The translations under genes and the position numbers were made by a program. The notes under the pieces are model-generated. The model had not been told where the DNA came from. It ran no database searches and saw only the letters and a list, made by a program, of their open reading frames with translations. DNA of 64,000 bases, taken from the IMG/VR virus record IMGVR_UViG_3300023174_002543, positions 1 through 64,000 of that record; one strand, given 5' to 3'. Of this stretch, positions 1 to 51,077 are shown one piece after another; the stretch's first letter is position 1, and each line of letters opens with the position of its first letter.

Positions 1-167
1 GCGCCTGTAAACGTGCCCGGACTCCCCGTGCCTCCCGGATACGTACCCGAGCCACCGCCGCCGCCTAAGCCTCCACCAGCGCCGCCGCCGCCACCGGACC
101 CACCAACACTACACGCACATGCACCGCATGCTATCAATCTACGTTTTTTTATGTTATCTGAATTCAT
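1..167 (-). CDS. C-terminal half of split gp38-like adhesin no.1, with conserved Cys-rich leader (runs off the window edge)
   Basis: Not in the ORF track. Manual translation from ATG at 167: MNSDNIKKRRLIACGACACSVGGSGGGGGAGGGLGGGGGSGTYPGGTGSPGTFTG... SD-like GGAG in GGAGAATACTAATATG. Paralog of 6145..6561. Confidence 0.85.
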   Translation of the reverse strand, partial: MNSDNIKKRRLIACGACACSVGGSGGGGGAGGGLGGGGGSGTYPGGTGSPGTFTG

Positions 168-171
168 ATTA
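111..171. repeat. Direct repeat copy 1 encoding the KKRRLIACGACAC leader (copy 2 at 6505..6565)
   Basis: 111..152 is identical to 6505..6546 over 42 nt; 58/61 nt match over the full span. Confidence 0.95.
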
Positions 172-882
172 GTATTCTCCACCACCACCGCCACCGCCAC
201 CACCACCGGCGCCAATCAAACCTAGATTGGATATTGATGTGCTATATCCCACATATAATGCAGGTCCACCTCCACCACCCGAAGCTCCGGCGTTGCCTCC
301 TGCAACACCAATTGGTCCATTGCCGCCAGCACCGCCATTACCGCCTCTACCTACTATACAACCTTTATTTATGAGCGTTAAACTTGAACCTGCAGGAAAT
401 GATGGTGATATATAGAACGCATACGAACCGGTACTAGATGATACCACAAATTGACCCACATCAATAGTAACCGTAAATGCTAGAGGTGATGATCCTCCCC
501 AACCCAATGATATAGCAGTAGCCCTCATATCAAAATTATACGTAGTACCTGATATAAGATATGAAAGGGTAGTCAGACACGAAGGGCTATTTGCAATATT
601 ACTATTATAAGATCCAAATCTACCATCCGATAATGTTCGAACTAACGTACTGCCACTACAAACTTGATTTAATAATGTACCATACGGTTCAGGACCGGCT
701 TTATTACGCATGTCATTCATTGAGATAGCACCAGATGGTCTAGCCGCTAGTACTCTAACTAGATAATCATTGAATGATATAGTATTTGTTGGATAATTAG
801 TGGAGCCACTGGCGTTATTAGTCACATTTAGTGCTGTTCTAACGTCACTTGCTCTTATTATTCCGGATGGAGTAGTACTCAT
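169..882 (-). CDS. N-terminal half of Gly-rich gp38-like tail-fibre adhesin no.1
   Basis: LTLINKGCIVGRGGNGG...ISNLGLIGAGGGGGGGG matches the T-even gp38 glycine-rich motif layout. It ends in the poly-Gly run. Paralog of 6576..7277. Confidence 0.75.
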   Translation of the reverse strand: MSTTPSGIIRASDVRTALNVTNNASGSTNYPTNTISFNDYLVRVLAARPSGAISMNDMRNKAGPEPYGTLLNQVCSGSTLVRTLSDGRFGSYNSNIANSPSCLTTLSYLISGTTYNFDMRATAISLGWGGSSPLAFTVTIDVGQFVVSSSTGSYAFYISPSFPAGSSLTLINKGCIVGRGGNGGAGGNGPIGVAGGNAGASGGGGGPALYVGYSTSISNLGLIGAGGGGGGGGGGEY

Positions 883-886
883 CTTA

Positions 887-894
887 TATTTATT
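887..894 (-). promoter_or_regulatory. T4-type late promoter (AATAAATA), 4 nt before the ATG at 882
   Basis: Matches the TATAAATA late consensus; a gp55 homolog is encoded in the window. Confidence 0.55.
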
Positions 895-938
895 AAATAA
901 TAACCTTGACTATTTTGAAGTAGCATGTTAGGGTAGGT

Positions 939-946
939 TATAAATA
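939..946 (+). promoter_or_regulatory. T4-type late promoter (TATAAATA), 5 nt before the ATG at 952
   Basis: Perfect TATAAATA, divergent from the promoter at 887..894. Confidence 0.6.
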
Positions 947-951
947 TAACT

Positions 952-1614
952 ATGAAAGCAGTTATTATTTGGTCAGGTGGCAAAGATAGTGCATATGCAC
1001 TCTATAAGGCGCGGCAACAAGGAATCGATGTAAAGTACGCTATTACCGGTTACTTTAGAGATATGCTGGTTCCGCCTACAGAAGAAACGATTAAAGCACA
1101 GACTGCAGCAGTCGGATTAGAAAGTATAATACTATATTCCGATTTAATTACGTTTCAAATCGCAGTAGAACAAAAACTCAAAGAATTGATTGACAAAGAA
1201 AATATCGATTGTGTAATCCACGGCGAAGGTCATTCTATGTCTAATATAATTTGGTTTAGGGATATGTGCCGAACGTTAAAAGTCAAACCTATATTACCAG
1301 TGTTTACTATCCCTACCATTGATTTGATGAATGAATTATTTGACAATAATTTTAAATTTATAATAACTCGGTTTGTTGTAGCAGGGTTTGACGATCCTAT
1401 AGTAGCTGAATACGCCGGTAAAGATTATACTAGAAAAATTCTAAATGAAGTATTATCATCTTATCCACCAGAAGAACATGGTCTTGCACTTTCATCTAAT
1501 CCATTTGGTCCATCTGGATTGTTACAGACTTTTGTTTATGACGGGCCTATATTTACTAATCCGATATCGGTTAATTTAGAAATTAAACAGTTTGGTAGGG
1601 TAGTGCTACGTTAA
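952..1614 (+). CDS. Diphthine-ammonia ligase (Dph6)-like PP-loop ATP pyrophosphatase
   Basis: N-terminal PP-loop WSGGKDS, central CRTLKVKPILP and C-terminal QTFVYDGPIF motifs typical of the diphthamide synthase/DUF71 family. Confidence 0.75.
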   Translation: MKAVIIWSGGKDSAYALYKARQQGIDVKYAITGYFRDMLVPPTEETIKAQTAAVGLESIILYSDLITFQIAVEQKLKELIDKENIDCVIHGEGHSMSNIIWFRDMCRTLKVKPILPVFTIPTIDLMNELFDNNFKFIITRFVVAGFDDPIVAEYAGKDYTRKILNEVLSSYPPEEHGLALSSNPFGPSGLLQTFVYDGPIFTNPISVNLEIKQFGRVVLR

Positions 1615-2623
1615 AGACTTTGGCAAATTCATTAGTATAATCTACATTCAAATAATTTTTATTTAAATAAACTTCAGGTACACGCAAATCAATATTGATC
1701 GGGTATATGATTCCTTCTTTTTCTAAAACAGTTAGTGTGAAAAAAGTAGATGAAATTCCTAAGCCAACAATTACTTCAGTCAATATAGATTTAAGGTGTT
1801 CAGGACATGATACAAAATTTACAGTATCTTGACTCAAATCTAAACTATGCGTAACACTACCGATTGCAACAATTTTCTTTCCTGCAACAGTTTCTCGTAA
1901 CATAAAGGGACACAATGAATCGGTGTCCTCACTATACAAATATTCGTCCCATGTAAAATTATTTGAATAAGAATTTGTTATTTGTCTTTCATAAGAAATT
2001 GTATTTTCAGTACATGATTGACAATAATCATATAAAGGTGTTAATGTTACTTTTTTATGTTTAGCTATGAAATCTGATGCCTGTTCTTTATTAGAAGGAA
2101 CAACAAATTCTAATTGCCTAATGTTTAAGTTTTTTTCACAAGTATGCGTCAAGTACTGTGCTAATATTGCTTTATTAGTAATAGTTAAGTCACCACCCAA
2201 ATCAGCTATTCTATATCTTGCGTTCTCTGAAAAATACTTAAAAGACTTATAATTAATATAAATGAATCTATCGTAGAGTGATACTGGATTATAAATTAAT
2301 TTTACTCGTTTATCATTGACTAATGGAAGTAGTATATCTACCAAATATGGATATTTAGTAAAATCAGTATCATCTATGTATACCAAAGCGCATCCTGGAT
2401 TTTCATTTGACTTTTTACAAATTTGGTTTTTTTTATATTCTATGATATTACCATTAATCAATCCCAAAACATATTCTTCTAACTTTCCAGATCTGGATAA
2501 GGATTCATACATCTCCTGAGGACAGTCAAATAATATCGGATCTAGATTAAGGTCATAATTGTATATGATTTTGTTTTTTTTAAATGTTATCATCGATGGT
2601 AATGTCATTTGTGGTACTTTCAA
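1583..2623 (-). CDS. ATP-grasp-fold-like protein, degenerate
   Basis: Spacing follows ATP-grasp (NK..L; VVP..EQASDF...KVTLTP; FMLRETVAG; GLG...FFTL...IYPINIDLR), but the canonical KP and E-x-N-x-R residues are substituted. Confidence 0.45.
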   Translation of the reverse strand: MKVPQMTLPSMITFKKNKIIYNYDLNLDPILFDCPQEMYESLSRSGKLEEYVLGLINGNIIEYKKNQICKKSNENPGCALVYIDDTDFTKYPYLVDILLPLVNDKRVKLIYNPVSLYDRFIYINYKSFKYFSENARYRIADLGGDLTITNKAILAQYLTHTCEKNLNIRQLEFVVPSNKEQASDFIAKHKKVTLTPLYDYCQSCTENTISYERQITNSYSNNFTWDEYLYSEDTDSLCPFMLRETVAGKKIVAIGSVTHSLDLSQDTVNFVSCPEHLKSILTEVIVGLGISSTFFTLTVLEKEGIIYPINIDLRVPEVYLNKNYLNVDYTNEFAKVFNVALPYQTV

Positions 2624-3353
2624 TATGAATTAAAGTAGTGTGTATGGAGGAAAATTCAAATATTATATTATTGCCTTTACGGACAGTGGTTCTTCCTAAA
2701 TTATACTTGTCTGTATTTATCGTTTGGTTGGGCGTCAGTATTAATAGATTATCAAACTTAGTTTTGTTACTTAATGAAAACTCTATGGGGTAGTTTACAT
2801 AAGGTTGAATTTCACCAAATGCCGATGGGTTCAATAGTATATCGCAATTTTCATCTAGTACATAATCAACTAGTGTATTATCCATAGTCTCGCTACATAT
2901 CAATGTATTAAATTTTATGTTGTTTAATTCAAACTGTTTAGAAATTACTCCGCCGTATTTAAAGTCTATACAATAAGGATGTGATAGTTTTTTGTGCTGT
3001 TTTTTTTCTTTAATAAGTTGAAAATTATCTTTGTCGATATAGTAGTATGCAGAAACTGTTCCACTATCTGTATGATTGTTATATGCAAATGATCCTATGA
3101 CCATTGTAACACAGTATTGCTTAACTAAGTTATGTAACAATATATGAAATTTTTCCAATGATTGGGTGTTGCATCCTATAACCTCTATAGTTATATCTGA
3201 TGATAACACACAATATCCGGTAAGTGCAAATTCAGGGAATACAACTAATTCTGATCCACTTAGTACAGACCTTATGTAACTTTTTTTTATTTGATTAAAA
3301 TTATACTCAACATTACAAAATTCAATTTGTAAGTGCACCATAGACAATTTCAT
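2580..3353 (-). CDS. Carbon-nitrogen hydrolase (nitrilase superfamily)
   Basis: LVVFPEFALTGY (catalytic Glu), a KKQ region (Lys) and TLICSE (Cys) form a plausible E-K-C triad. Confidence 0.8.
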   Translation of the reverse strand: MKLSMVHLQIEFCNVEYNFNQIKKSYIRSVLSGSELVVFPEFALTGYCVLSSDITIEVIGCNTQSLEKFHILLHNLVKQYCVTMVIGSFAYNNHTDSGTVSAYYYIDKDNFQLIKEKKQHKKLSHPYCIDFKYGGVISKQFELNNIKFNTLICSETMDNTLVDYVLDENCDILLNPSAFGEIQPYVNYPIEFSLSNKTKFDNLLILTPNQTINTDKYNLGRTTVRKGNNIIFEFSSIHTTLIHIESTTNDITIDDNI

Positions 3354-3808
3354 TTTTTATTTGGCCATTCACCTTCCGCAGTGGGCCATATTATATCGTA
3401 GGGGAACCCTGGTTGCTGAGGTACATTACGCAGTTCTTGTCTAAATTTTTTAAATCGTGCAACAGCTTCATCTGAAAAGCCAGCATCAGACATCATTAAC
3501 CAATCACTAGCACGTAATCTTTCATCACGTTCAGCACGAATAGTTCTTGCTTTATCCATTCTTAATTCATCAATAGACCTGGTATCTAATGAACGTATAT
3601 AATCAATATTTTCTATACCTTCAATAATAGCTTTTTTCCTATCTACCGCCCAAACAGGATTAAATCCCTCAATGTATCGAACCAGTGGTTCGCCCTCAAG
3701 ATAACGATTATTTTCAATTGGTAGGTCAATGGCAATAGGATTAGGTAGTGCGTCAAATTTTACAATTAGTTGACCAGTTTCTTCAATAAAATTTAAAATG
3801 CTATACAT
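3350..3808 (-). CDS. Tail fibre assembly chaperone
   Basis: C-terminal IRAERDERLRASDW...FRQELRNVPQQPGFPYDIIWP motif. Confidence 0.85.
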   Translation of the reverse strand: MYSILNFIEETGQLIVKFDALPNPIAIDLPIENNRYLEGEPLVRYIEGFNPVWAVDRKKAIIEGIENIDYIRSLDTRSIDELRMDKARTIRAERDERLRASDWLMMSDAGFSDEAVARFKKFRQELRNVPQQPGFPYDIIWPTAEGEWPNKK

Positions 3809-3815
3809 TAACTTG

Positions 3816-5246
3816 TTATTCCGTAACTAGTGTTGGCATTTCATGTATGCCGTATTCTATTAATTCTACATCTTCATTAAACAAAATCCTAAATGATGCT
3901 TTTTGAATTTCTCCATACCAAATTTTTTCAACTTTACAATTTGTATAAAACGTTTCATCCGGTAACTTTATAGGACAACTGCTTCTACAAAGTAACTTAT
4001 TAGGGCAATTGCCACAGTGTGATTGCTTATCATTTAATGACAATGATAGTATACGAATACCTTTAATATTGTTTAGTGACCCGTATATATGGTCTTTGTC
4101 TGTATGGGGGCAAGTACGTATCATACCATCTACGTCTAATGAAATCACGTCCTGCATGTCAGCACCGCAGTTAGTTTTTTCTAATATAGGTTCACCTTGA
4201 ATCAATTTCCTAGCAAATTCTAATGCAGAATATGCGACTTGTTCTTCCATTAAATCACACAATAATAGCGGAAGTTCTTCAACTGATTTTTCATATATTG
4301 TAGGTGCACCGTCTACAAAACTTTCAATATATTGTTTATAGTGTTGTGACAAGAATTCACGCAATATCATTCTAAATTTATCAAGATTCTCACCATGTAT
4401 TACGTGTGTGAAACTCTCACTCTTTGGACCTTCAGTGGGTACTTCATTATCAATGATGTTACAACCCAAAGCATTTGCTGGATTATATGATGCTGATTCT
4501 TGGTATGTTCTACCCAACGAAAATTGAAGTGAACGAGACTTAAGACCGTTTTCTATAATTTTGTTTCTAAAGAAATCATTTATCTCAAACAAATCAAAAT
4601 TAGTATTTGTTACTGAACAAGAGAAGCCGTATACTATATGAGGTATCTCATCAAACATACGTAATGTTTCAATTACTCGAGGTCTGTTAAAAATTTCATC
4701 ACCACGTAATTGTTGTTGCTTCTCTGCATCATGTGACAAGTTCATGTTAATCATATAACATTTTATTGTTCTAAAAAACTCAGCATGTTTTGGAGACAAT
4801 GCTGAACCATTAGTAGAGATAACAAAGGTTACATTTTCATTTTCAAAGAACTTCATTATCTCTTGCATGTCATTCCAATATAAGAAGGGTTCACCTCCCC
4901 AAAGTTCAACACGTTTTAAATTAGACAAGTCTAAGTTATCTTTGATGTTTTGAAAGAATCGTTCTAAGTTTTCTCGTTTTGGTAATTCATTAGGATTACC
5001 TATATCTTTTTGCATACAATAAGTGCAACTGTAGTTACATGCATGTCCCATTAAGATACGCAATGCAATTGGCTTATTGTGTTTTTTACGTGAGTTATAA
5101 GTATCTACTGCAAACTTACTATATTCGCTCCAATCTTGGTCAGGAGTCAATTGTATACGTGAGCCGTCAAGTTCATGTAATTTGTTATTTACATTATCAT
5201 AGTAGAATTCTATACCTGATGTTGTTTTAAATTTGCTGTATTTCAT
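3816..5246 (-). CDS. Radical SAM protein with C-terminal SPASM domain (peptide/protein maturase-like)
   Basis: CNYSCTYC (CxxxCxxC), WGGEPF, STNG, and SPASM cysteines CGA...RTCPH...CGNCPNKLLCRSSCP...C. Confidence 0.9.
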   Translation of the reverse strand: MKYSKFKTTSGIEFYYDNVNNKLHELDGSRIQLTPDQDWSEYSKFAVDTYNSRKKHNKPIALRILMGHACNYSCTYCMQKDIGNPNELPKRENLERFFQNIKDNLDLSNLKRVELWGGEPFLYWNDMQEIMKFFENENVTFVISTNGSALSPKHAEFFRTIKCYMINMNLSHDAEKQQQLRGDEIFNRPRVIETLRMFDEIPHIVYGFSCSVTNTNFDLFEINDFFRNKIIENGLKSRSLQFSLGRTYQESASYNPANALGCNIIDNEVPTEGPKSESFTHVIHGENLDKFRMILREFLSQHYKQYIESFVDGAPTIYEKSVEELPLLLCDLMEEQVAYSALEFARKLIQGEPILEKTNCGADMQDVISLDVDGMIRTCPHTDKDHIYGSLNNIKGIRILSLSLNDKQSHCGNCPNKLLCRSSCPIKLPDETFYTNCKVEKIWYGEIQKASFRILFNEDVELIEYGIHEMPTLVTE

Positions 5247-6103
5247 TTTTTAAATAATTCTTTCAAGTCGTTCAGGAAAGGTGCATTAAACATAAACATC
5301 CCCTGTATTTGTGTTCTTTTCTCTGGGAGGGTACAAGTAATCTCTGGAAGTTTTGTCCAATGTAAACTAGGCTTTACATGATGTTCTTGATGATAACCAC
5401 TATTAAAGCAGAAAAAATTATAGAGTTTACCATATGATCCTATAGAGTCGCATCTAAAATTACTATGGTCTACTGCATTATAATGCTCTCCGTAACTGTT
5501 TGCGTTATTAGCAACCAATGTTAAAAATATTACCATGATATAAAACAAAGAATACCAAATATTTACAAACATGATAGATAAGAAATATAATACTATCATT
5601 GTATTTTCTATGCGTAGTTTTTTTCTATCAAGGGTTTTAAATTTAGTAGAGCATGTATTTTCTATGTCACGTTCAGAAATACCAGACAAATCTCTATATA
5701 ATCCATACACGATATATGACCAAACATTTTCACGTTTACCATTTTTACCATAACGATAAAAGGATATAGGATCTTTTACTATACCGTTTTTCTGCATGTC
5801 GTTATTGTATCTATGATGCGTTAAATGATAGTACTTCCATAACTGGAATGGAATAGTTGAGGGCATCCCCACAAATATCTCATATATTCTGTTAAAAATT
5901 TTACTATTGAATATGGGCGTGTGGGTATGATGATGCATTGATGTGTTCATCAATACCACGGTGTATATTATTTGAAATGGAGTTAACAACACCCAAAGCC
6001 AAATATTTTCAATGTAGAGTGCAATACCAAATGGTAACAAAAACCCAACCAATGCATATAGCACTAAAAATATATCTAATATCGAATTTCTAAATACTTT
6101 CAT
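5243..6103 (-). CDS. Membrane fatty acid desaturase family (di-iron His-box) protein
   Basis: His boxes HHHTH, HLTHH and HQEHH, plus hydrophobic transmembrane segments. Confidence 0.85.
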   Translation of the reverse strand: MKVFRNSILDIFLVLYALVGFLLPFGIALYIENIWLWVLLTPFQIIYTVVLMNTSMHHHTHTPIFNSKIFNRIYEIFVGMPSTIPFQLWKYYHLTHHRYNNDMQKNGIVKDPISFYRYGKNGKRENVWSYIVYGLYRDLSGISERDIENTCSTKFKTLDRKKLRIENTMIVLYFLSIMFVNIWYSLFYIMVIFLTLVANNANSYGEHYNAVDHSNFRCDSIGSYGKLYNFFCFNSGYHQEHHVKPSLHWTKLPEITCTLPEKRTQIQGMFMFNAPFLNDLKELFKK

Positions 6104-6108
6104 TAAAG

Positions 6109-6116
6109 TATTTATC
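6109..6116 (-). promoter_or_regulatory. Late promoter (GATAAATA), 5 nt before the desaturase ATG; heads the tailoring-enzyme operon
   Basis: GATAAATA-CTTTA-ATG with no SD. Confidence 0.55.
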
Positions 6117-6144
6117 CTTATAGTACTATCCTCATTTAAATAAA

Positions 6145-6561
6145 TTAACTCACTGCTCCGTGCCTAGTCCCGGTTACTATCCAGTTTACATTACTGTTAC
6201 CTACAATTGCAGCACCGGCCGCACCACCTGCACCACCATAGCCAGTACCATTACCAGTGCTGTTGCCGCCCGCTGCACCAGACGTGCCTAAGAAACCGCC
6301 GGTGCCACCGGTACCTCCTGTATACCCCGCTACACCACCGGTAATACCGGCACCGCCGGCGCCGCCTCCTGTTGCTGTGCCGTTCGCTCCGGTGCCGCCA
6401 GTTGGTCGGGTACTGCCATTTATGGTAACGGTTACGAGACTCGCACCTCCGGTCGCGCCAAGCCCATTGCCGGCACCTCCTCCCCCTCCTCCTCCGCCCC
6501 AATAACACGCACATGCACCGCATGCTATCAATCTACGTTTTTTTATAATATCTGTATTCAT
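6145..6561 (-). CDS. C-terminal half of split gp38-like adhesin no.2, with conserved Cys-rich leader
   Basis: Starts MNTDIIKKRRLIACGACAC, then poly-Gly; ends GAAIVGNSNVNWIVTGTRHGAVS like gp38-type adhesin C-termini. SD AAGGA upstream. Confidence 0.85.
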   Translation of the reverse strand: MNTDIIKKRRLIACGACACYWGGGGGGGGAGNGLGATGGASLVTVTINGSTRPTGGTGANGTATGGGAGGAGITGGVAGYTGGTGGTGGFLGTSGAAGGNSTGNGTGYGGAGGAAGAAIVGNSNVNWIVTGTRHGAVS

Positions 6562-6565
6562 ATTA
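6505..6565. repeat. Direct repeat copy 2 (leader-encoding)
   Basis: 42-nt exact match to 111..152. Confidence 0.95.
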
Positions 6566-6575
6566 ATATTGTTCC

Positions 6576-7277
6576 TTAGGCGGATGCGCCGCCACCGCCC
6601 CCGCCTCCTCCGCCACCAATAGTACCATTATTAGTTATTGATGTGCTATATCCCACATATAATGCAGGGCCACCGGCGGTGCCGGCACTGCCGGTTATTC
6701 TGGCGGCGCCACCGGCACCAATGCCGCCATCACCACCTTTACCAATTATATAACCATTATTTATGAGTGTTAAACTTGAACCTGCAGGAAATGTAGGAGA
6801 TATATAGACTGCATAAGATCCCGTACTAATTGAGGTAACGTATATGCCGGTTGCAATAGTAAGAGTTGCGTTTACTGCTTGTGTACCATTCCATCCAGCA
6901 TCTACTATAGCTTTTCTTAAGTCAAAATTATTGGTATTTGCTGGAATAGTATAATTATAAGTAAATCCGCAACTGGGGCTGTTTGCTATATCATTTATTG
7001 TAGAACCGTATTTCCCGTCTGCTATTGATTGCCTTAAGGTACTACCGACACAAATGCTACTTAAAACTGTTCCGGATGCTGTGGGGCCGGCTTTGTTACG
7101 CATATCACTCATTGAAATGGTAGATTTATCAGTGGGTTTTCCAGCCAATATTCTAACCAATGAATCATTAAATGTTAGTACAGCCGTGGCGCTTGGGTAA
7201 TTAGTAGATAATCCCTCGTTTAAGGTAGTCTCTACATTCTTAACACTTATAGCATTGGGTGCGGCTGGGGTAGGCAT
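6576..7277 (-). CDS. N-terminal half of Gly-rich gp38-like tail-fibre adhesin no.2
   Basis: LTLINNGYIIGKGGDGG...NNGTIGGGGGGGGG. Shares DNA blocks with 169..882 (e.g. 232..264 = 6636..6668). Confidence 0.75.
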   Translation of the reverse strand: MPTPAAPNAISVKNVETTLNEGLSTNYPSATAVLTFNDSLVRILAGKPTDKSTISMSDMRNKAGPTASGTVLSSICVGSTLRQSIADGKYGSTINDIANSPSCGFTYNYTIPANTNNFDLRKAIVDAGWNGTQAVNATLTIATGIYVTSISTGSYAVYISPTFPAGSSLTLINNGYIIGKGGDGGIGAGGAARITGSAGTAGGPALYVGYSTSITNNGTIGGGGGGGGGGASA

Positions 7278-7278
7278 G

Positions 7279-7830
7279 TTATTTAATATACTCTATAAAT
7301 TCTTCTTTTGTCAAAAATTTTTTCACTATATGTGATTTACATTCAATAATAAACTTATCAATGTATTCTAACAATTTTTCTATAGCACTATCTTTGGTAA
7401 TGAAGACTTCAAATTTTTCAGTTTTATAGTTAAAAATTTCATAATGATGCATTGGATTATTCATTGGTAATTTGTTGTATTCATCTGCACTCTCCAGTAA
7501 ATTGAAATAAGAGTTAGTGTATAATATTTCTTTATTATTATCAGTGTTGAATCGTATTACTGCAATTATGAATTTATGTTTGTTCTGTTGTAGTATTTCT
7601 TCGCGGTTTTCATAGTATAAATGGTCAATGATTATTGACATATTTTTATCTGCTGGTTTAGACGAACCTTGTGTTGGTTCAGTTGGCATATAAATTATAT
7701 TTGCAAATATATCATCATCAATATAATATGTAGAATCTAAAACATTATATGTTGAATCTGTAGGTAACTGATTGATATCATTTACAACAATATCGTATGT
7801 CTTTGATAAATGTTTCACCAAATATATCAT
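7279..7830 (-). CDS. Hypothetical protein, paralog of 8906..9196; possible fibre-associated accessory protein
   Basis: N-terminus MIYLVKH...IVVNDINQLP resembles MIYLLTD...IIVKDMRYLP. Each lies directly upstream of a Gly-rich gene. Confidence 0.6.
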   Translation of the reverse strand: MIYLVKHLSKTYDIVVNDINQLPTDSTYNVLDSTYYIDDDIFANIIYMPTEPTQGSSKPADKNMSIIIDHLYYENREEILQQNKHKFIIAVIRFNTDNNKEILYTNSYFNLLESADEYNKLPMNNPMHHYEIFNYKTEKFEVFITKDSAIEKLLEYIDKFIIECKSHIVKKFLTKEEFIEYIK

Positions 7831-8904: not shown

Positions 8905-8905
8905 A

Positions 8906-9196
8906 TTAATTATTCATTATGTATATAAGATATGCAGAGAAAAAATCCAAACTATCAAATTTTTTAACCATAGAGTTTTTAAAAAAATGTTGCACAATGA
9001 TGCGAACTTCATCATCAGTGCCCGATACATCGTTAGGTATCGTTACTATGTCTGCAAAAGTACTATCATTTACCATAAAAAAATGCTTACCGTTTTCATG
9101 AGATATATTATACTGGTCATCAAAAGGAAGGTATCTCATGTCCTTGACAATGATTGTTTTATTTTTTGTAGTAGCGTCAGTTAATAGATATATCAT
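8906..9196 (-). CDS. Hypothetical protein, paralog of 7279..7830
   Basis: The ORF track starts at TTG 9214; ATG at 9196 aligns with the paralog start. Confidence 0.6.
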   Translation of the reverse strand: MIYLLTDATTKNKTIIVKDMRYLPFDDQYNISHENGKHFFMVNDSTFADIVTIPNDVSGTDDEVRIIVQHFFKNSMVKKFDSLDFFSAYLIYIMNN

Positions 9197-9229
9197 AAAC
9201 CCCAATAGGACCAAAATAGTTCCTATTAG

Positions 9230-9237: not shown

Positions 9238-9241
9238 GGCT

Positions 9242-11182
9242 TTACTTACTGTGATAATATTGGGTTAACCATTCCCAATCATAACTTAACATGAGTTTTT
9301 CCATGTTCCCGTCAACATGTTGATAGTAATTGACTGCATCTCTTGCACCCATTTTACTGTATTCTCCAAAATTCCCATTACCTTTGTTTAACCAAGCAGA
9401 ACCCCTATCAATTGATTCTTGGTCAGTATTAGCACATAACTTAATCATTTCTCTGAATGCAGTTCTCCAAGTATCATATTCGCTAGAATTATATGTACTG
9501 ATACCGGAATTAATATCTACAATTTCAGTTGGGCTATCCATAGTAAAGTCTAAGCCGTTGACCTCTGTATTCAATGTAAGTTTACGATTATTCACTACTA
9601 TTGCTTGATGTCCGTATTCTAAACTATTAACAGGGTTGGTACAAGTAAAGATATAGTGACGGCTACTTTTCATTCTGTTTGGTTGCCAATTAAAGTCAAA
9701 GTCATCTCTTACTCTTAACTTAGCATTAACTAGAAAGTACCACGGCGTTGTTGATATGTTTGCCGCGGCATGTTGGCTTTTAACACGACCATTTACTCTA
9801 TCAACTCTGTGTACTTTATTAGGTAAATTTTTTGTAATCTCTAATAAATGATTATAATTATCTTCCGCACAACTTTCACCGTTGCTAAAAAATACAATAT
9901 CTAATGGTTCTATTTTAGTCGGATATCGATGATGAAATACATATGAATAGTCTGAAAGTTTGTCATATAACTTATACACAACATCGCTAGGTACTACTGC
10001 TTCATACTCATTGAGTATATGTAAATATGGATTGTGTTCCATGTTTGGTAATATCTTTTGGTAATCTATTGTCGGCTTGTCTACATAAAAATGAACATAC
10101 TTACTTGAATATAAATGTTTTACCACTGCATCAAATATACTATCCTCAACCCGCACTTTAGGTATATCTAATTTAGCAACTACATCAGTCATGTACTTTG
10201 TACCCACGCTATCACGTTGTCTATAAATGACGGTTGGCATATTTTCAGGAGGAAAGTATTCATTACCAAATACATATGTATATGGTTCTTCTGTTTCATC
10301 CGGGTGCCAACTATAGTCAAAATCAACTACTGATTCTATAACTCTAAACTTCTTAGACATAGGAATACGAATACTGGACTGTGCGTCACAATACTTCTTA
10401 ATTGTTGCATTACGCATACTGTATATTGGTCCACCTGTCTTTTGCCATTGTGTACCAAACTCATACATGTAGGGTGGTTCAGTATCATCAGGATGCCAAC
10501 TAAAGTCAAAACTATCCATGTCAATACTTTCAGGTATTGACCAGCGTCTTAAATTAGGTAATCGTATAGCAATCTGAGTATCATTGTATTTTACAATCTC
10601 AGCATTATCAGGTGTGTATCTTGGTCCACCTGTCTTTTGCCATTGCGTTCCAAACTGATGTATCAAATTAGGTTCATGTGGACTGGGTCTCCAGCTATAG
10701 TCAAATGAATCTTCACTTAGACCCTCAGGTATATACCATTTTTCTATCTCAGGCAATAATGTTGCTTTGATGTTATCTATATACTTTTTATCAATGGCAC
10801 CTTTAACTCTATACTGAACGGTAGGCATTGTTGTACTATCATACCATTGATTACCAAATACGTATATGAATGGTGGTTCAGTGTCATCTGGATGCCAGCT
10901 ATAATCAAAGTTGATGTTACTAACTAAATTTCTATAGCATCTACTATTACTATCAGGTAGTTTCTTTGCTATTTGATGATTTTGATATTTGATACCTTCA
11001 CTTTCAGGTATAACAAATCTTGGACCACCTGTCTTTTGATGTTGTGTACCAAACTGATGTGTATATGGTCTATCGTATGGTTCGGGTCTCCAATCAAAAT
11101 CAAAATTGGTAGTATCTAAAAAATCAGGGACTTCCCAATACCCCTGTTTAAATAATTCTAATCTACGTTCAATATCTATCAT
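9242..11182 (-). CDS. Repeat protein (five FDxSWxP repeats) fused to a glycosyltransferase-like C-terminal domain
   Basis: Repeats FD[YF][SD]W[HR]P...FG[TN][QE]. C-terminal LDIVFFSNGE...HAAANISTTPWYFLVNA...WRTAFRE is homologous to 15010..15963. Confidence 0.65.
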   Translation of the reverse strand: MIDIERRLELFKQGYWEVPDFLDTTNFDFDWRPEPYDRPYTHQFGTQHQKTGGPRFVIPESEGIKYQNHQIAKKLPDSNSRCYRNLVSNINFDYSWHPDDTEPPFIYVFGNQWYDSTTMPTVQYRVKGAIDKKYIDNIKATLLPEIEKWYIPEGLSEDSFDYSWRPSPHEPNLIHQFGTQWQKTGGPRYTPDNAEIVKYNDTQIAIRLPNLRRWSIPESIDMDSFDFSWHPDDTEPPYMYEFGTQWQKTGGPIYSMRNATIKKYCDAQSSIRIPMSKKFRVIESVVDFDYSWHPDETEEPYTYVFGNEYFPPENMPTVIYRQRDSVGTKYMTDVVAKLDIPKVRVEDSIFDAVVKHLYSSKYVHFYVDKPTIDYQKILPNMEHNPYLHILNEYEAVVPSDVVYKLYDKLSDYSYVFHHRYPTKIEPLDIVFFSNGESCAEDNYNHLLEITKNLPNKVHRVDRVNGRVKSQHAAANISTTPWYFLVNAKLRVRDDFDFNWQPNRMKSSRHYIFTCTNPVNSLEYGHQAIVVNNRKLTLNTEVNGLDFTMDSPTEIVDINSGISTYNSSEYDTWRTAFREMIKLCANTDQESIDRGSAWLNKGNGNFGEYSKMGARDAVNYYQHVDGNMEKLMLSYDWEWLTQYYHSK

Positions 11183-12657
11183 GTATACACTTTGATACCA
11201 TACAGTTTTTCAAAACGTCTAGCATCACCCTTGTCATTGACCATTGGTTCACCTCGTATGTTTAAACTTGTATTAAGTAACATAGGGCATTCAGTCATCA
11301 CATACCATTTTTCAAGGAGCTCTCTAATTCCGCTTCCATCATCAGGGACAGTTTGTACACGACTAGTCCCGTCAACATGAACGATAGCAGGAAATAAGTC
11401 AGGATACCTACACTTAGCAACTGACTGCATATACCTGCTGTTATCGAAACCGCTAGGCATACTAAAGTACTTATTAGCATACTCCTCCAAAATAACTGGA
11501 GCAAAGGGTCTGAACTTTTGTCTACGTTTGATTTCATTTACTCTATCCTTAATTTCATTGCCTCTAGGGTCTGCCAATAAACTTCTATTACCCAATGCTC
11601 TCGGACCAAATTCTGCACGACCACTAGCAATACCAATAATTTCTCCGCGTAATAGTGCATCAAGTGCTTTATTAGTAGGATACTTACCCTCTATATTATA
11701 ACCAAGAAAGGCATTATTCCAGTTAACTCTATAGTTAAATCCAAGTGCGGCTGCGCCTAAACTACTACCTGCATCGCCCGGATTAGGCATAATCCATATA
11801 TGTTCAAAGTGTTTACCTAAATGTTGATTAGCAACACAATTCAATGCTACACCGCCGCCATATACTAGATTTCTACTATGTCCAAGAATTCTTGCACGTT
11901 GCATTACATTATAGATTAGTTGTTCAGCCAAAACTTGACTACTTGCAGCAATATCCATTTTGTCAGCATCTTGCATGTACGTTTCAGATACACCTAGATG
12001 TAAATTATCATTGAATTCTAAATCAACACTATAACTCAACATGTCTTGATGCATTTGGGCATAGTATTTAGGATCCCCGTATGCGCTCATACCCATTAAG
12101 ATATATTCTTCTTCGTTGGGTTTTAATCCTACACGCTTAGTCATTGCGCTATAAAACAATCCAATACTATTAGGATATTTTTGACTCCATAGTTTTTTAT
12201 ACTTAGGACCTTTAGATGTATATCGTGCATCCCAAATACTGATAGTATCAAATTCTCCTATTGCATCAATCACTACTATCGTTGCATCAACAAAACCACT
12301 AGTTTGAAATCCGGCTGCCGCATGTGTTAAATGATGGCTATGAGTATGAATCTTTTTATTGTAAAGCATATTATGAATATCTTTACCTATAATATTCTTA
12401 GCAAATAATGTGTTGAATCTTGGATTCTGTCCTGCTCGGAGTTGTCGTAGATATTTTAACGTTGGGTTTTCGTAGTAGTGAAGTTCATAATCACCCTTTA
12501 CATATGATAGTGCGTCTTCTACCAATCTTGGATGTAGATTTTTATCATTTTTAATTTTACTATATCGTTCTGAATGCCCGGCAAAAAGTATTTTGCCGCC
12601 GGCAATAACACTTATACTAGCATCGTGAAACCCAGCACTAATTCCTATGTAATACAT
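11179..12657 (-). CDS. Carbamoyltransferase (NodU/CmcH/TobZ family)
   Basis: GISAGFHDAS, HHLTHAA, GGVALNC, EFGPRALGNRSLLADP, RPFAP and LLNTSLN motifs. Confidence 0.95.
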   Translation of the reverse strand: MYYIGISAGFHDASISVIAGGKILFAGHSERYSKIKNDKNLHPRLVEDALSYVKGDYELHYYENPTLKYLRQLRAGQNPRFNTLFAKNIIGKDIHNMLYNKKIHTHSHHLTHAAAGFQTSGFVDATIVVIDAIGEFDTISIWDARYTSKGPKYKKLWSQKYPNSIGLFYSAMTKRVGLKPNEEEYILMGMSAYGDPKYYAQMHQDMLSYSVDLEFNDNLHLGVSETYMQDADKMDIAASSQVLAEQLIYNVMQRARILGHSRNLVYGGGVALNCVANQHLGKHFEHIWIMPNPGDAGSSLGAAALGFNYRVNWNNAFLGYNIEGKYPTNKALDALLRGEIIGIASGRAEFGPRALGNRSLLADPRGNEIKDRVNEIKRRQKFRPFAPVILEEYANKYFSMPSGFDNSRYMQSVAKCRYPDLFPAIVHVDGTSRVQTVPDDGSGIRELLEKWYVMTECPMLLNTSLNIRGEPMVNDKGDARRFEKLYGIKVYT

Positions 12658-12658
12658 A

Positions 12659-12772
12659 TCAATATATAAATGGATCTTTTTTCTTTAACTCTTTAAGTTT
12701 TTCTTTAAGTCGTTTACGATACTTATACTCTCTAACTATATTGTCATATATTTTTTTTAAAAAATCAATCAT
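12659..12772 (-). CDS. Small basic protein ending KKKDPFIY, directly upstream of the carbamoyltransferase
   Basis: Not in the ORF track. Manual translation MIDFLKKIYDNIVREYKYRKRLKEKLKELKKKDPFIY (37 aa) fills the gap exactly; its stop lies 1 nt before the next ATG. Confidence 0.7.
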   Translation of the reverse strand: MIDFLKKIYDNIVREYKYRKRLKEKLKELKKKDPFIY

Positions 12773-13592
12773 TAGGTATTACCTCAAAAAATTTAGTTAC
12801 TATTGAATCTTGATGCAGAAACCCCGGATGTGAGGTGTCAACATTTTTAATACTACTAATATCTCTTGCTCTATTAAAATGTAGACATTGAACGTTTTCA
12901 AATATTCCTTGTGACATTGGTAAATCACTTATAATGTCAGGATATTTATTACCAAATGTATCATTAACAACATCCTGATAAGTACTCATTTCAAACAACG
13001 GTATATTAGACAACTTACAAATTACTTGTATTGTTGTTCGTATAATATCAAATCTGTTAAAAACTTGATGATCCATTACGATAAAATCTTGATATGACCT
13101 TTTCCAATGACCATCATCAATCAAGTTTGGTAGCATAAATTGAGTATGTATTTCGTCAATCCAATAAAACGTGCGATACACACTAGGCCAATTTATAATT
13201 ACTGCTTTTGGTTTATTTGGCGCTTTGTTCATTAGATTTACAAAATTGTAATATACAAAATCAACACTACTACCGCCCATACTTGCATTAACGTAATCAA
13301 CACCGGCTTGTTCTGCTATTTTATATACATACGTATCTTCTAGTCTTAACCCAAATCCAGCAGTAAAACTACACCCAAAAAAAGCATAGTAGTTATTGTA
13401 ATCAACATCTTCTAATTGTTTCATCCTATAACCTAATCTGTTAAATTTATAGGTAATAGGATTCTTAGCGTAGTACCAATCACTACCATATTTCTTTAGA
13501 TTAAGTTTAAATGCTTCCTCTGAATCTGTGTGTGCAAAAGGGACTTCAACATCAATCAAATTTTCATGTGATGACCTGATTAAAAAATTCAT
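12765..13592 (-). CDS. SGNH/GDSL hydrolase-like protein
   Basis: FFGCSFTAG (block I), NASMGGSS (block II) and a C-terminal D..HP motif. Confidence 0.6.
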   Translation of the reverse strand: MNFLIRSSHENLIDVEVPFAHTDSEEAFKLNLKKYGSDWYYAKNPITYKFNRLGYRMKQLEDVDYNNYYAFFGCSFTAGFGLRLEDTYVYKIAEQAGVDYVNASMGGSSVDFVYYNFVNLMNKAPNKPKAVIINWPSVYRTFYWIDEIHTQFMLPNLIDDGHWKRSYQDFIVMDHQVFNRFDIIRTTIQVICKLSNIPLFEMSTYQDVVNDTFGNKYPDIISDLPMSQGIFENVQCLHFNRARDISSIKNVDTSHPGFLHQDSIVTKFFEVIPND

Positions 13593-15016
13593 TACAATCC
13601 CTTAAAATCATTATACATTTGTGTTAGTTCGGGAAATGTTTCTAAAAAGTTTGTTCCCCTTCTACGGTCATGTTCATCAACAAAGATGACAAAATCTTTA
13701 CGGTGCTTATCACGATTGCTATCAACATTTTTAAATTCGCTCGTAATAATATTATAGATACGTTGTAATTTGTAGATTTCATGGTCATAGAAACCCGTAT
13801 ACTCTTCACCGGGGATTCTACTTTCTTTGTTATCTTCCATAAACTTAAGTTGTTCTTCAACATAATGTATCAAGTATTCTGGCATGATATAACATGTTTG
13901 ATGTTCAGGATGACGTAAGTATGGCATGTCTAATCCGATAGGCATTCTATGATATTTGTATGCTTGCGGTCTATACTTCAATCTAATTCTTAACATATCT
14001 GCTAAGAAATCTTTGAATGTTGGTACACTTAATAGATTATAGGTACTCATTATACTAATAACTGCACTAGGTACTTCTTCTAACATACGTTCTATGTTGC
14101 TGATCCATTGGTCATAGTTCATACCATTGCGAATATATTCTGCTTGCTTACCATAGGCTTCGGCTGATGTAAATATTTGCAATCGTTGTATCAATTTACC
14201 TTCTTCTATAATCTTTAGTTTTTCAATGAACTTGTCATACAATTCATCGGGTACATTCATATTAGTGTTGACGCTAAATGTTAGATTAGGGTTAGGATTC
14301 TCAATAATATAGTCAAGTACTTTGAATGTATTCTTGTTTAGTAACGGTTCACCGCCGGTTATTCTAAACTGTTTTAGTTGGCTATACATATCGGGCCACC
14401 ATTTCCAAAACGCATCAACATATGGGTTATCTTGATTGTTTGGAATAGGCATTTGTTGATTCTGTTTGAACCACTCTAGGTTATTGAATTTTTGTGATGT
14501 AGGGTAGTGCCCATATCGTTCAATTTCTTCCATCCATTGACTACTGATGTTGGGACTACAATAACTGCATTTGAAGTTGCATACATTACTAAAACTAATC
14601 TCAACATAACTAGGGTCAATGTTAGCATCCCATGGGGTGGTTGCAATTTCTTCAATATGCGGCACTGCCCATGTTTTATCCGAACTCTTATATGTTCTAT
14701 CACTGTAACGATTACCACTATCTTCGGCGCGCCAACAATAATCACATTCGCTAGGGCGTTCACCCTCAAGCATTAGTTTACGTTGACTCTTTTTAAACTC
14801 TGTATTGTGAAGTGCAGTTGGGTTGCGTCTAATTTCTTCTAACGGAACTATATGCGTGTTAGGATGATGGCAACTATGTGTGTGTCCATTTTGCAAGTGC
14901 ATAGTTACTTGTTTCCACTTAGCTACACAAAAACTAGGACTTACTTTATTGATAGCAATATAAGTATTCTCTAAATGTTCGCCGTATTTGTCTTCTTCTG
15001 TTCTTTGCATTACCAT
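13592..15016 (-). CDS. Radical SAM protein with N-terminal twitch-like Cys cluster
   Basis: CNFKCSYC, ITGGEPLL and VNTN motifs; N-terminal FC...SCHH...ECDYCW. Start may be ATG 15010 (TAATG overlap). Confidence 0.85.
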   Translation of the reverse strand: MVMQRTEEDKYGEHLENTYIAINKVSPSFCVAKWKQVTMHLQNGHTHSCHHPNTHIVPLEEIRRNPTALHNTEFKKSQRKLMLEGERPSECDYCWRAEDSGNRYSDRTYKSSDKTWAVPHIEEIATTPWDANIDPSYVEISFSNVCNFKCSYCSPNISSQWMEEIERYGHYPTSQKFNNLEWFKQNQQMPIPNNQDNPYVDAFWKWWPDMYSQLKQFRITGGEPLLNKNTFKVLDYIIENPNPNLTFSVNTNMNVPDELYDKFIEKLKIIEEGKLIQRLQIFTSAEAYGKQAEYIRNGMNYDQWISNIERMLEEVPSAVISIMSTYNLLSVPTFKDFLADMLRIRLKYRPQAYKYHRMPIGLDMPYLRHPEHQTCYIMPEYLIHYVEEQLKFMEDNKESRIPGEEYTGFYDHEIYKLQRIYNIITSEFKNVDSNRDKHRKDFVIFVDEHDRRRGTNFLETFPELTQMYNDFKGL

Positions 15017-50126: not shown

Positions 50127-50155
50127 TTGTATTTCTACAACCGTTATGCTATACT
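50127..50155 (+). promoter_or_regulatory. Sigma70-type promoter for gp55 (TTGTAT-17-TATACT, extended TG)
   Basis: -35 at 50127..50132, 17-nt spacer, TGc followed by TATACT at 50150..50155. Confidence 0.65.
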
Positions 50156-50180
50156 CAATTCATCAAAACTACGGAGAAAT

Positions 50181-51077
50181 ATGAGTTTACCAAGCAAAAA
50201 ACCAGTCAACTATTTAAACAATAAAGACATATTAAAAGAGATTCATTCAAGCAAAAACACATATTGTGTATTCTTAAAACCAGAGGACCATAGATACGAT
50301 TTCATAGTAGACATGCCCACTGAGTCTATGGAAAAAAGTTTAGAGTTCGCATATAAGCCAGAAAATATTCAATTAGCCCGCGAAACTAGGGCCACAAGAT
50401 TGAGTTTAGAGGCAGGGGAAAAGGATTCAGTAGATCCATTAAGTATCCCAATGACAGATTTAGTATTTAGGGTAATGACTTGGGATCATATTCCGGTCGC
50501 ACCAAAACAACCCCGCAAAGTAGATAAAAAGAAAACTGCAAAAGATTTCTTTGAGTTTGACAGTGACCAAGATGAAATCTTCTCAGACTTAGAAGATCCA
50601 GCTACTATAAAAGAAATTGATGATATGGTTCATGTCAAAGTTAATTTCCCACCATTCCAACATTTTCGACTAGACAAGAACAACACATTCAAGTGTATTG
50701 GTAAGAGTCATTGGATTGGTGATTTGAAAAAAGGTGAATTCAGTAAAGACCAAGGTAATATTACTAACAAACTTGCCCGTATGTATATTATGATGTGTGA
50801 AAAGTATGCTATGAAATTCAATTGGCGCGGATATACATACAACGATGAAATGCGTAACAGTGCCATTCTACAGCTTACATATGTTGGGTTACGATTCAAC
50901 GAAGCAAAAAGTGCCAATCCTTTCGCATACTACACAGCTGCAATTACAAATAGTTTCTGTCGTGTATTAAACAGTGAAAAGCGTAACCAGAATATAAGGG
51001 ATGACATTTTAGAAATGAATGGACTAAACCCAAGTTGGAGTCGTCAGGGTACTTCAAGTACGGTTTATGAAGAATAG
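50181..51077 (+). CDS. gp55: Late-transcription sigma factor (T4 gp55-like)
   Basis: VNYLNNKDIL and NWRGYTYNDEM...NPFAYYT motifs. Start refined to ATG 50181 (SD GGAG) because the track's TTG 50127 coincides with the -35 box. Confidence 0.85.
   Translation: MSLPSKKPVNYLNNKDILKEIHSSKNTYCVFLKPEDHRYDFIVDMPTESMEKSLEFAYKPENIQLARETRATRLSLEAGEKDSVDPLSIPMTDLVFRVMTWDHIPVAPKQPRKVDKKKTAKDFFEFDSDQDEIFSDLEDPATIKEIDDMVHVKVNFPPFQHFRLDKNNTFKCIGKSHWIGDLKKGEFSKDQGNITNKLARMYIMMCEKYAMKFNWRGYTYNDEMRNSAILQLTYVGLRFNEAKSANPFAYYTAAITNSFCRVLNSEKRNQNIRDDILEMNGLNPSWSRQGTSSTVYEE

Follow-up and report, generated by a model that had tools for sequence, protein, structure and literature searches.

The DNA analysed here, referred to below as the window, is a stretch of 64,000 nucleotides (positions 1 to 64,000 of IMG/VR record IMGVR_UViG_3300023174_002543) derived from a freshwater jumbo T4-like phage. 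Close to its left end lies a locus for a tail-fibre adhesin of the Gp38 type, which is encoded in two pieces, and within this locus are found three adjacent genes for a PP-loop ATPase of the DUF71 family (PF01902), a protein with a predicted ATP-grasp fold, and an amidase of the nitrilase superfamily (Table 1). According to the initial annotation, the region contains an ATP pyrophosphatase with an SGGKDS motif, which is the only plus-strand gene in the first 50 kb and has its own perfect late promoter, and a nearby nitrilase-fold protein, the two forming a possible two-gene glutamine-dependent amidation module. The observation itself was confirmed, although the gene located between the two had been overlooked, whereas the proposed function is supported only in part.

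Table 1 Features of the adhesin locus and of other regions mentioned in the text (window coordinates)
Position	Strand	Feature	Length	Observations
1..167	-	5' part of the second Gly-rich adhesin C-half (C2)		Starts at the ATG at 167-165 with the motif KKRRLIACGAC; cut off by the start of the record; full gene (147 aa) in the 100%-identical contig L020; near-identical complete homologue P0021
169..882	-	Second Gp38-like adhesin N-half (N2)	237 aa	Ends in poly-Gly followed by EY; Pfam GP38 30.0 bits (cut-off 25); PHROG tail fibre/host specificity
887..893	-	ATAAATA, late-promoter-like element		4 nt upstream of the N2 ATG (coordinates derived from this distance); divergent from the element at 939-946
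939..946	+	TATAAATA octamer, candidate T4-type late promoter		5 nt upstream of the PP-loop ATG
952..1614	+	DUF71/PF01902 PP-loop ATP pyrophosphatase	220 aa	Starts MKAVIIWSGGKDS; WSGGKDS at residues 7-13
1583..2608	-	Orphan protein with predicted ATP-grasp fold		ORF listed from a TTG at 2623, but homologues and the Atlas record start at the ATG at 2608; 3' end overlaps the PP-loop gene convergently by 32 nt
2580..3353	-	Nitrilase-superfamily (C-N hydrolase) amidase	257 aa	CN_hydrolase 31.4 bits (cut-off 23.2)
3350..3808	-	Tail-fibre assembly chaperone (Phage_tail_APC/Tfa-like)	152 aa
3816..5246	-	Radical-SAM enzyme with complete SPASM cysteine pattern		Most conserved protein of the locus
5243..6103	-	Membrane fatty-acid-desaturase-family di-iron protein	286 aa	Pfam FA_desaturase 97 bits; ATAAATA 5 nt before the ATG; conserved in most of the loci
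6145..6561	-	Gly-rich adhesin C-half (C1)	138 aa	N-terminal motif KKRRLIACGAC followed by poly-Gly; C-terminus resembles the end of unsplit Gp38
6576..7277	-	Gp38-like adhesin N-half (N1)	233 aa	Ends in Gly10 followed by ASA; Pfam GP38 26.1 bits (cut-off 25)
11179..15016		Carbamoyltransferase and a second radical-SAM enzyme
50127..51077		gp55-like late sigma factor

Sequence and predicted structure of the encoded proteins

The PP-loop gene is the only credible plus-strand gene before position 50127. Its product matches the Pfam model Diphthami_syn_2 with 78.4 bits (cut-off 23.2), residues 1-209 being aligned to model positions 1-200 of 219, and retrieves the PDB entries PH1257 (E = 4.8e-8) and PF0828. 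Within the PP-loop, W7, S8, G9, G10, K11, and D12 are invariant in 12 sequences. The octamer preceding this gene is not enriched in the window, as it occurs three times whereas 15.8 occurrences are expected from shuffled sequences. The 7-mer ATAAATA, however, recurs 4-6 nt before the ATGs at 952, 882, 6103, and 59106 and 17-21 nt before three more, a gp55-like late sigma factor is encoded in the window, and a homologous locus has CATAAATA 24 nt upstream of its PP-loop gene, followed by a GAGGAG ribosome-binding site. A late promoter, inferred from sequence alone, is therefore plausible.

The nitrilase-superfamily assignment is based on the Pfam match and on an AF2 model (pTM 0.81), which matches amidases, Nit2, and the NadE glutaminase domain over its full length (Foldseek E = 1e-13 to 1e-10, TM 0.6-0.67). 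The residues E41, K115, K117, and C153 (in ICSE), which provide the Glu-Lys-Cys triad with either K115 or K117 as the lysine, are invariant in six homologues down to 37% identity, and the Cys and Glu columns align to those of glutamine-dependent NAD+ synthetase (NadE).

For the protein encoded between these two genes, neither a Pfam search nor a PDB search with its sequence profile gave a match, and only about five true relatives were found among 1.84 billion representatives. The ATP-grasp fold is deduced from an AF2 model (pLDDT 73), which retrieved PurK, PsnB, MdnC, LysX, Ddl, and ITPK1 from the PDB (Foldseek probability 1.0, E about 1e-7), from Atlas features (0.96) and structure (TM by query 0.55-0.68), and from ATP-grasp hits in BFVD. 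In sequence alignments, the position corresponding to the conserved Lys in the VKPxYG motif of family B of the ATP-grasp-like proteins is T195 in the window's protein and Lys in some homologues, the E243-equivalent varies as E, K, or Q, the QE-like and Mg-ligand-like positions vary among homologues, and D312 is invariant but not within an E-x-N context, so that this protein may not be catalytic.

The radical-SAM enzyme contains CX3CX2C (C70/C74/C77) and the seven-cysteine SPASM pattern typical of peptide maturases (C360-X13-G-X4-C379; C411-X2-C414-X5-C420-X3-C424; C437), all of which is invariant in seven homologues, although no equivalog cut-off was reached. The GP38 matches of both N-halves cover only model positions 4-117 of 218. 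Searches of the PDB with the N-half and the C-half gave no usable hit from which the split could have been mapped onto the solved S16 Gp38 structure. The sequence L-I-A-C in the C-half resembles a lipobox, but on inspection no hydrophobic core precedes it, and a lipoprotein signal peptide was therefore rejected.

Conservation and exchange of the three-gene module

PP-loop homologues with 43-94% identity are located in the metagenomic loci L002-L011, each of which shows the PP-loop gene convergent with the ATP-grasp-like gene, followed by the C-N hydrolase gene, next to a Gp38 N-half ending in poly-Gly, a Gly-rich C-half carrying the motif RRL-x-x-CGAC, and a radical-SAM/SPASM enzyme, usually together with the chaperone and the desaturase-like protein. 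The initial annotation had named independent occurrence of the genes, of each other and of adhesin loci, as a result that would speak against its proposal, and this was not observed: all six independent loci with a PP-loop homologue of at least 43% identity and sufficient flanking sequence also carry the nitrilase-fold gene and the split adhesin. As the two-gene design of the adhesin recurs in many independent assemblies, it is an old, conserved architecture and not a fresh break, an assembly artefact, or a recent pseudogene. In contig L018, the tail-fibre chaperone is fused to an ATP-grasp-like protein.

In a close relative (L019), which is 81-89% identical in nucleotides on both flanks and whose radical-SAM enzyme is 95% identical at the protein level, exactly the region 900-3352 of the window is replaced by genes for a 343-aa protein of ATP-grasp size, a convergent 210-aa PP-loop protein, and a 2OG-Fe(II) oxygenase. 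In contig L020, which is 100% identical to the window, 2,901 bp that are missing from the record just beyond the window start contain a second convergent pair of an ATP-grasp-like gene (361 aa) and a DUF71 gene (253 aa, L020 13938-14699) right after N2/C2. The two ATP-grasp-like families align collinearly (hhalign E = 3e-4). The constant partner of the PP-loop gene is therefore the ATP-grasp-like gene and not the nitrilase gene, which is absent from the sister modules; these carry a 2OG oxygenase and an Asp/Asn beta-hydroxylase.

The module is nevertheless accessory, since the split adhesin and the radical-SAM enzyme occur without the trio in locus L016 and in the P0023 contig. The presence of the radical-SAM enzyme follows that of the RRLxxCGAC motif in the loci inspected, and locus L017 lacks both. 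Near-identity and protein searches of a phage collection revealed no near relative, one weak PP-loop hit, and none for the C-N hydrolase. A scan of IMG/VR with the PP-loop alignment gave a single unrelated high-GC locus, which was judged irrelevant, and scans of genome contigs with the ATP-grasp-like and C-half alignments gave nothing, the module being found in no bacterial genome among 185,579 species representatives. A scan of viral contigs with the C-half was also negative, probably because of the low complexity of this sequence. Literature searches on radical SAM or SPASM, ATP-grasp, and tail fibre or gp38 retrieved no description of such a locus.

Comparison with characterized systems

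Dph6, the diphthine-ammonia ligase (DUF71, COG2102), shares its fold family and PP-loop motif with the phage protein. The only characterized DUF71 enzyme adenylates and amidates a protein-bound carboxylate, and members of this family draw ammonia from varying partner domains (PMC3541065). However, the strictly conserved Dph6 motif EGGE/DxE188 (PF0828 numbering) is replaced by G-P-[SA]-G-x-x-Q-T in the whole phage clade, Val is present at the position of H48, and the score against TIGR03679 is only 68.5 (cut-off 197.3), so that a true Dph6 was rejected; the substrate cannot be diphthine. The ENGE[FY]H188 motif of the DUF71-B12 subfamily is likewise absent from the window's protein, which has Gln at the 188-equivalent position, and the clade thus forms a third subfamily, whereas the second DUF71 protein of this phage has N-E-Y-H. 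The phage gene also differs from Dph6 in its pairing with an ATP-grasp-fold gene.

NadE likewise combines a nitrilase-fold glutaminase with a PP-loop ATP pyrophosphatase, and the best NCBIfam and PDB profile matches of the phage C-N hydrolase are, though weakly, NadE glutaminase domains (PRK13981, 29.3 bits, cut-off 479). In the phage, the two proteins are encoded by separate genes on opposite strands with the ATP-grasp-like gene between them, and the PP-loop protein belongs to DUF71 rather than to the NAD synthase family. A complex prediction for the PP-loop protein and the C-N hydrolase scored 0.01, which is evidence neither for nor against binding.

In clusters for RiPP maturation with SPASM radical-SAM and ATP-grasp enzymes (sactipeptide/ranthipeptide and graspetide types), as in the phage locus, a SPASM enzyme is found next to a small protein with a Cys motif, and the model of the ATP-grasp-like protein matches the macrocyclases PsnB and MdnC, CdnC-type ligases, and LysX/ArgX, the LysX/LysW or RimK C-terminal ligases being a further system for comparison. 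The presumed phage substrate, however, is a structural adhesin fragment of 126-205 aa and not a short secreted peptide, the ATP-grasp-like protein matches no sequence profile and, judged from sequence alignments, appears to have non-canonical residues at the expected ATP-binding positions, and a DUF71 protein and a nitrilase are not known as parts of such clusters.

With the T2/S16-type Gp38 tip adhesin (PF05268), the phage proteins share the architecture of glycine-rich motifs and the location at the distal end of a tail-fibre gene string in a T4-like phage. The GP38 model matches the N-halves, some C-halves, and the unsplit relatives, and the C-half profile retrieves unsplit PF05268 proteins. 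The phage adhesin differs in being encoded by two genes, split in a loop between poly-Gly tracts, in the Cys-motif leader of the C-half, and in the accompanying enzymes.

Possible role of the module

The region 900-3352 is best explained as a discrete, horizontally exchangeable module. The analysis establishes its composition, conservation, and synteny and shows that it is exactly replaced by another module in a close relative, and that an ATP-grasp-like gene is paired with a convergent PP-loop gene after each of the two adhesin pairs of this phage. Everything concerning function is inferred from gene context. In the explanation that we favour, although only tentatively, the module acts on the adhesin or its assembly complex and not on a free metabolite, its most likely role being ATP-dependent tailoring of a carboxylate on the split adhesin, possibly amidation. 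The PP-loop enzyme would adenylate a protein-bound carboxylate, as Dph6 does on EF-2, the most accessible candidate being the new C-terminus of the N-half just after its poly-Gly strand, and the activated carboxylate would be resolved by a nitrogen nucleophile, in this module ammonia released by the nitrilase-fold protein acting as glutaminase or amidase. The ATP-grasp-fold protein would recognize and present the substrate or perform a second ATP-dependent ligation, and the SPASM enzyme would separately modify the CGAC motif of the C-half. The proposal of the initial annotation that the PP-loop and nitrilase-fold proteins amidate or ligate a carboxylate on the adhesin is thus partly supported: the association with the adhesin and the ammonia-donor idea find support, but the block comprises three genes, and no direct evidence exists for amidation or for the C-terminus of the adhesin as substrate.

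A protein substrate is suggested by the full SPASM pattern and its correlation with the Cys motif, by the protein amidation catalyzed by the characterized DUF71 enzyme, by the replacement with neutral residues of the acidic residues that DUF71 uses near cationic diphthine, by the RiPP macrocyclases and LysX among the top structural matches of the ATP-grasp model, by the chaperone fusion, and by the 2OG oxygenase and Asp/Asn beta-hydroxylase of the sister modules. On the other hand, no modification has been observed, the C-N hydrolase is not a constant component, its structural neighbours are generic small amidases as much as NadE, and C-N hydrolases and the DUF71-B12 subfamily usually act on small molecules. 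Receptor-binding tips decide the host range of phages and are generally treated as unmodified gene products. If a conserved, swappable set of ATP-dependent and radical enzymes is dedicated to a two-piece Gp38-type adhesin, host recognition in these phages would depend on post-translational chemistry as well as on sequence, and the locus would offer a first functional handle on a third DUF71 subfamily, an orphan ATP-grasp family, and a new partner arrangement for a nitrilase-fold amidase.

Alternatively, but less likely, the three enzymes might, with the desaturase-family protein and possibly the nearby carbamoyltransferase, make or modify a non-protein compound, such as a lipid or sugar decoration of the fibre, or alter the host surface or receptor late in infection. 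This view is in line with the typical action of C-N hydrolases on small amides (the nearest structures being PH0642, Nit2, and aliphatic amidases), the predicted action of the DUF71-B12 subfamily on a cobamide (PMC3541065), the B12-like E-Y-H motif of the second PP-loop protein, the action of FA_desaturase-family enzymes on lipids, the carbamoyltransferase and second radical-SAM enzyme, and glycosyltransferases near related loci. It is opposed by the strict placement of the modules directly after each adhesin pair, the correlation of the peptide-type SPASM enzyme with the Cys motif, the chaperone fusion, and the absence of the module from the bacterial genomes searched.

It is unlikely that the genes are unrelated accessory genes (morons or auxiliary metabolic genes) accumulating in a recombination hot spot between tail-fibre genes. 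The wholesale swap between close relatives, the existence of split adhesins without the module, its low GC content (ATP-grasp-like gene 0.288 and C-N hydrolase gene 0.295, compared to 0.354 for the window), and a homing-endonuclease-like insertion in a related PP-loop gene, which marks a mobile region, would fit this view. However, the three genes stay together with overlapping 3' ends beside the adhesin and radical-SAM genes while PP-loop identity falls to 43% and backbones differ, the replacement modules have the same design of an ATP-grasp-sized plus a PP-loop protein, and the chaperone fusion also argues against it.

Least likely, though not excluded, is a covalent joining of the adhesin halves into a full-length adhesin assembled from two genes, in which the C-terminal carboxylate of the N-half would be activated by the DUF71 and/or ATP-grasp-like protein and joined to an amine of the C-half, and/or the SPASM enzyme would staple a Cys of the CGAC motif to the poly-Gly strand, a protein-ligation or RiPP-like maturation route for a virion structural protein in which exchangeable enzyme modules would match exchangeable adhesin halves; no precedent is known for protein-protein ligation by these families, non-covalent complementation of two halves of a poly-Gly sandwich would suffice, and the trio is absent from some split-adhesin loci. 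Compatible with it are the presence of two predicted ATP-dependent carboxylate activators, the conserved Lys/Arg-rich, Cys-containing N-terminal motif of the C-halves, and the ends of the N-halves, which in trio-bearing loci lie only 2-3 residues after poly-Gly compared to 6-9 residues in two trio-less loci, a contrast resting on very few loci. In addition, the unsplit homologues P0025 and P0026 have a loop exactly where the split lies.

Genomic setting and the enzyme genes

The window represents the first 64 kb of a 367,104-bp IMG/VR virus record, contig Ga0214921_10000014, and carries T4-type core genes for baseplate wedge and hub, portal, a gp46/47-like nuclease, and a gp55-like late sigma factor. 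A search of the phage collection revealed no record close to it. A 513-kb ENA contig (designated L020), however, is 100% identical to window 1-12623 and to the last 5.5 kb of the record, and shows that the record lacks 2,901 bp between its end and its start. The genome is therefore about 370 kb and circularly permuted or concatemeric in assemblies.

The initial annotation had described a PP-loop ATP pyrophosphatase gene with its own late promoter, the only plus-strand gene of the first 50 kb, and a nearby gene for a nitrilase-fold protein, and these genes were confirmed. The PP-loop gene encodes a 220-aa protein starting with MKAVIIWSGGKDS, which matches PF01902 at 78.4 bits (cut-off 23.2) as well as the solved DUF71 proteins PH1257 and PF0828, and it is the only credible plus-strand gene before position 50127. 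The protein encoded by the second gene belongs to the nitrilase superfamily (31.4 bits in Pfam, cut-off 23.2); its residues E41, K115/K117, and C153 are invariant, and its AF2 model (pTM 0.81) gave full-length Foldseek matches which include the PH0642 amidase, Nit2, and the glutaminase domain of NadE. With respect to the promoter, the octamer TATAAATA is located 5 nt before the ATG of the PP-loop gene, but it is rarer in the window than expected by chance (3 occurrences against 15.8 expected). The 7-mer ATAAATA is found 4-6 nt before the starts at 952, 882, 6103, and 59106, which, if it is a promoter, implies leaderless or very short-leader late transcripts, and 17-21 nt before three others. 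In a homologous locus, CATAAATA is located 24 nt upstream of the PP-loop gene and is followed by a GAGGAG site. A late promoter is therefore plausible, but not demonstrated.

A third gene located between these two had been overlooked in the initial annotation. Its product has no sequence match in Pfam, NCBIfam, PHROG, or PDB, yet its AF2 model (pLDDT 73) has a predicted ATP-grasp fold. A profile search of 1.84 billion representatives yielded only 14 hits, about five of which are real, and the family is thus an orphan. The 3' end of this gene overlaps the convergent PP-loop gene by 32 nt, and the same convergent overlap, comprising 14-32 nt, is present in every related locus.

Features of the locus and of related contigs
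Source	Coordinates	Strand	Feature
Window	1-167	-	Start of a second C-half (C2)
Window	169-882	-	Second Gp38 N-half (N2)
Window	887-893		ATAAATA
Window	939-946		TATAAATA before the PP-loop gene, containing ATAAATA
Window	952-1614	+	PP-loop gene (DUF71/PF01902)
Window	1583-2608	-	ATP-grasp-like protein (predicted fold)
Window	2580-3353	-	Nitrilase-fold protein
Window	3350-3808	-	Tfa-like chaperone
Window	3816-5246	-	Radical-SAM enzyme (rSAM) with a complete, invariant SPASM cysteine pattern
Window	5243-6103	-	Desaturase-family membrane protein
Window	6109-6115		ATAAATA
Window	6145-6561	-	Gly-rich C-half (C1), starting with KKRRLIACGAC followed by poly-Gly
Window	6576-7277	-	Gp38 N-half (N1), ending with Gly10-ASA
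Window	11179-12657		NodU/CmcH-type carbamoyltransferase
Window	13592-15016		Second radical-SAM protein
Window	21233-38416	-	Single ORF of 5,727 aa
L020 (ENA contig)	12624-15524		Piece missing from the record: rest of C2, 361-aa ATP-grasp-like gene, convergent 253-aa DUF71 PP-loop gene
L005 (phage contig with split adhesin)	7379-9175		TonB-dependent receptor gene
L017 (phage contig with split adhesin)	11401-13452		TonB-dependent receptor gene
P0023 contig (split adhesin)			TonB-dependent receptor gene
L008 (relative)	5832-7088		Extended Gp38 N-half
L019 (close relative)	8653-9309 and 14127-14663		2OG-Fe(II) oxygenase (PF13759) and Asp/Asn beta-hydroxylase-family protein
L015	8484-9194 (record about 365588-366298)		Acyl-CoA-type desaturase-family gene (236 aa)

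A split adhesin and an exchangeable module

The small Gly-rich protein is encoded by a conserved gene in all related loci and is homologous to the C-terminal part of unsplit Gp38-like proteins. All N-halves end just after a Gly10 tract, apart from that of the relative L008, in which the N-half continues past the poly-Gly tract into an extension of ~190 aa with hydrophobic stretches and no Pfam match, while a separate C-half gene is still present. The split is therefore an established two-gene design, placed in a loop between poly-Gly tracts.

Ten homologues of the PP-loop protein with 43-94% identity were identified, and the contigs of five of them were inspected. Together with the window, these give six independent loci with enough flank, and every one carries the same trio (PP-loop, ATP-grasp-like, and nitrilase-fold genes) next to the split adhesin and the rSAM. 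Occurrence of the PP-loop and nitrilase-fold genes independently of each other and of adhesin loci had been set beforehand as evidence against a two-gene amidation module in the tail-fibre locus, and this was not observed. One PP-loop homologue (P0011) is 61% identical over its first ~80 residues and then continues into repeated KYG-x-E-x-x-SQ modules and a Cys/His-rich tail, which looks like a homing-endonuclease-type insertion or fusion. A second cassette type adds a second DUF71 paralogue and a second ATP-grasp-like protein.

The close relative L019 shares 81-89% nucleotide identity with the window in both flanks, and its rSAM is 95% identical at the protein level, but the homology breaks at window positions ~900 and 3353. 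Between these points, L019 has a 343-aa protein, a convergent 210-aa PP-loop protein, and a 2OG-Fe(II) oxygenase. This sister locus carries the oxygenase and an Asp/Asn beta-hydroxylase-family protein next to further Gp38 genes, including an unsplit Gp38 of 332 aa. In the window's own phage, the missing 2.9 kb holds the 361-aa protein and the convergent DUF71 protein directly after N2/C2, and this second ATP-grasp-like family aligns collinearly with the first one (hhalign E = 3e-4). Each adhesin pair is thus followed by an ATP-grasp-like/PP-loop pair, whereas the nitrilase is a clade-specific third member. A second desaturase-family gene lies near the record end, about 3.4 kb beyond the second PP-loop pair in the bridged genome.

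Conversely, split adhesin plus rSAM occurs without the trio in locus L016 and in the P0023 contig, and L017, whose C-half lacks the RRLxxCGAC motif, also lacks the rSAM. In three separate contigs (L005, L017, and the P0023 contig), genes for TonB-dependent receptors (Plug plus beta-barrel) are located next to the adhesin/enzyme cassette, which is unusual for phages.

Family placement and inferred function

In the DUF71 literature, Dph6 is defined by the motif EGGE/DxE188 and the B12 subfamily by ENGE[FY]H (PMC3541065). The clade of the window's protein has G-P-[SA]-G-x-x-Q-T instead and Val at the H48 position, which makes it a third subfamily; we infer that the loss of the acidic cluster fits a substrate that is not cationic. 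The best profile hits of the nitrilase-fold protein are the glutaminase domains of NadE, but these matches are weak. The ATP-grasp-like protein has Thr at the position where family B, the second ATP-grasp-like family, keeps the Lys of VKPxYG, and its other expected catalytic positions vary, so that any catalytic role remains hypothetical.

The initial annotation had proposed that the PP-loop and nitrilase-fold proteins may amidate or ligate a carboxylate on the adhesin, and this interpretation is partly supported by our analysis. In the best-supported reading, which is nevertheless tentative, the adhesin would be tailored: the DUF71 enzyme would adenylate a protein-bound carboxylate, ammonia from the nitrilase-fold amidase would resolve the activated carboxylate, the ATP-grasp-like protein would recognise the substrate or perform a second ligation, and the SPASM rSAM would act on the CGAC motif of the C-half. 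Whereas the composition of the module, its recurrence beside the adhesin genes, and its replacement in L019 were directly observed, the substrate and each of these activities are inferred, and all the evidence for them is contextual; the complex prediction was uninformative. A protein substrate is supported by the SPASM signature and the tracking of rSAM presence with the motif, by the precedent of Dph6, by the RiPP-type and LysX-type structural neighbours of the ATP-grasp-like model, by a contig of low coverage in which the chaperone is fused to the ATP-grasp-like protein, and by the protein hydroxylase-type enzymes of the sister modules. Our literature searches retrieved no description of such a locus. 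The enzyme families themselves are known, and what is new is their combination, their apparent dedication to a split Gp38 adhesin, and the modular swapping.

As an alternative, a small-molecule, lipid, or glycan route has to be considered, which nitrilases, desaturase-family enzymes, and the nearby carbamoyltransferase fit equally well. This carbamoyltransferase and the second radical-SAM protein are encoded upstream in the same gene string, flanked by ORFs without a family match, and may represent a further tailoring set. The single ORF of 5,727 aa is located upstream of the baseplate genes.
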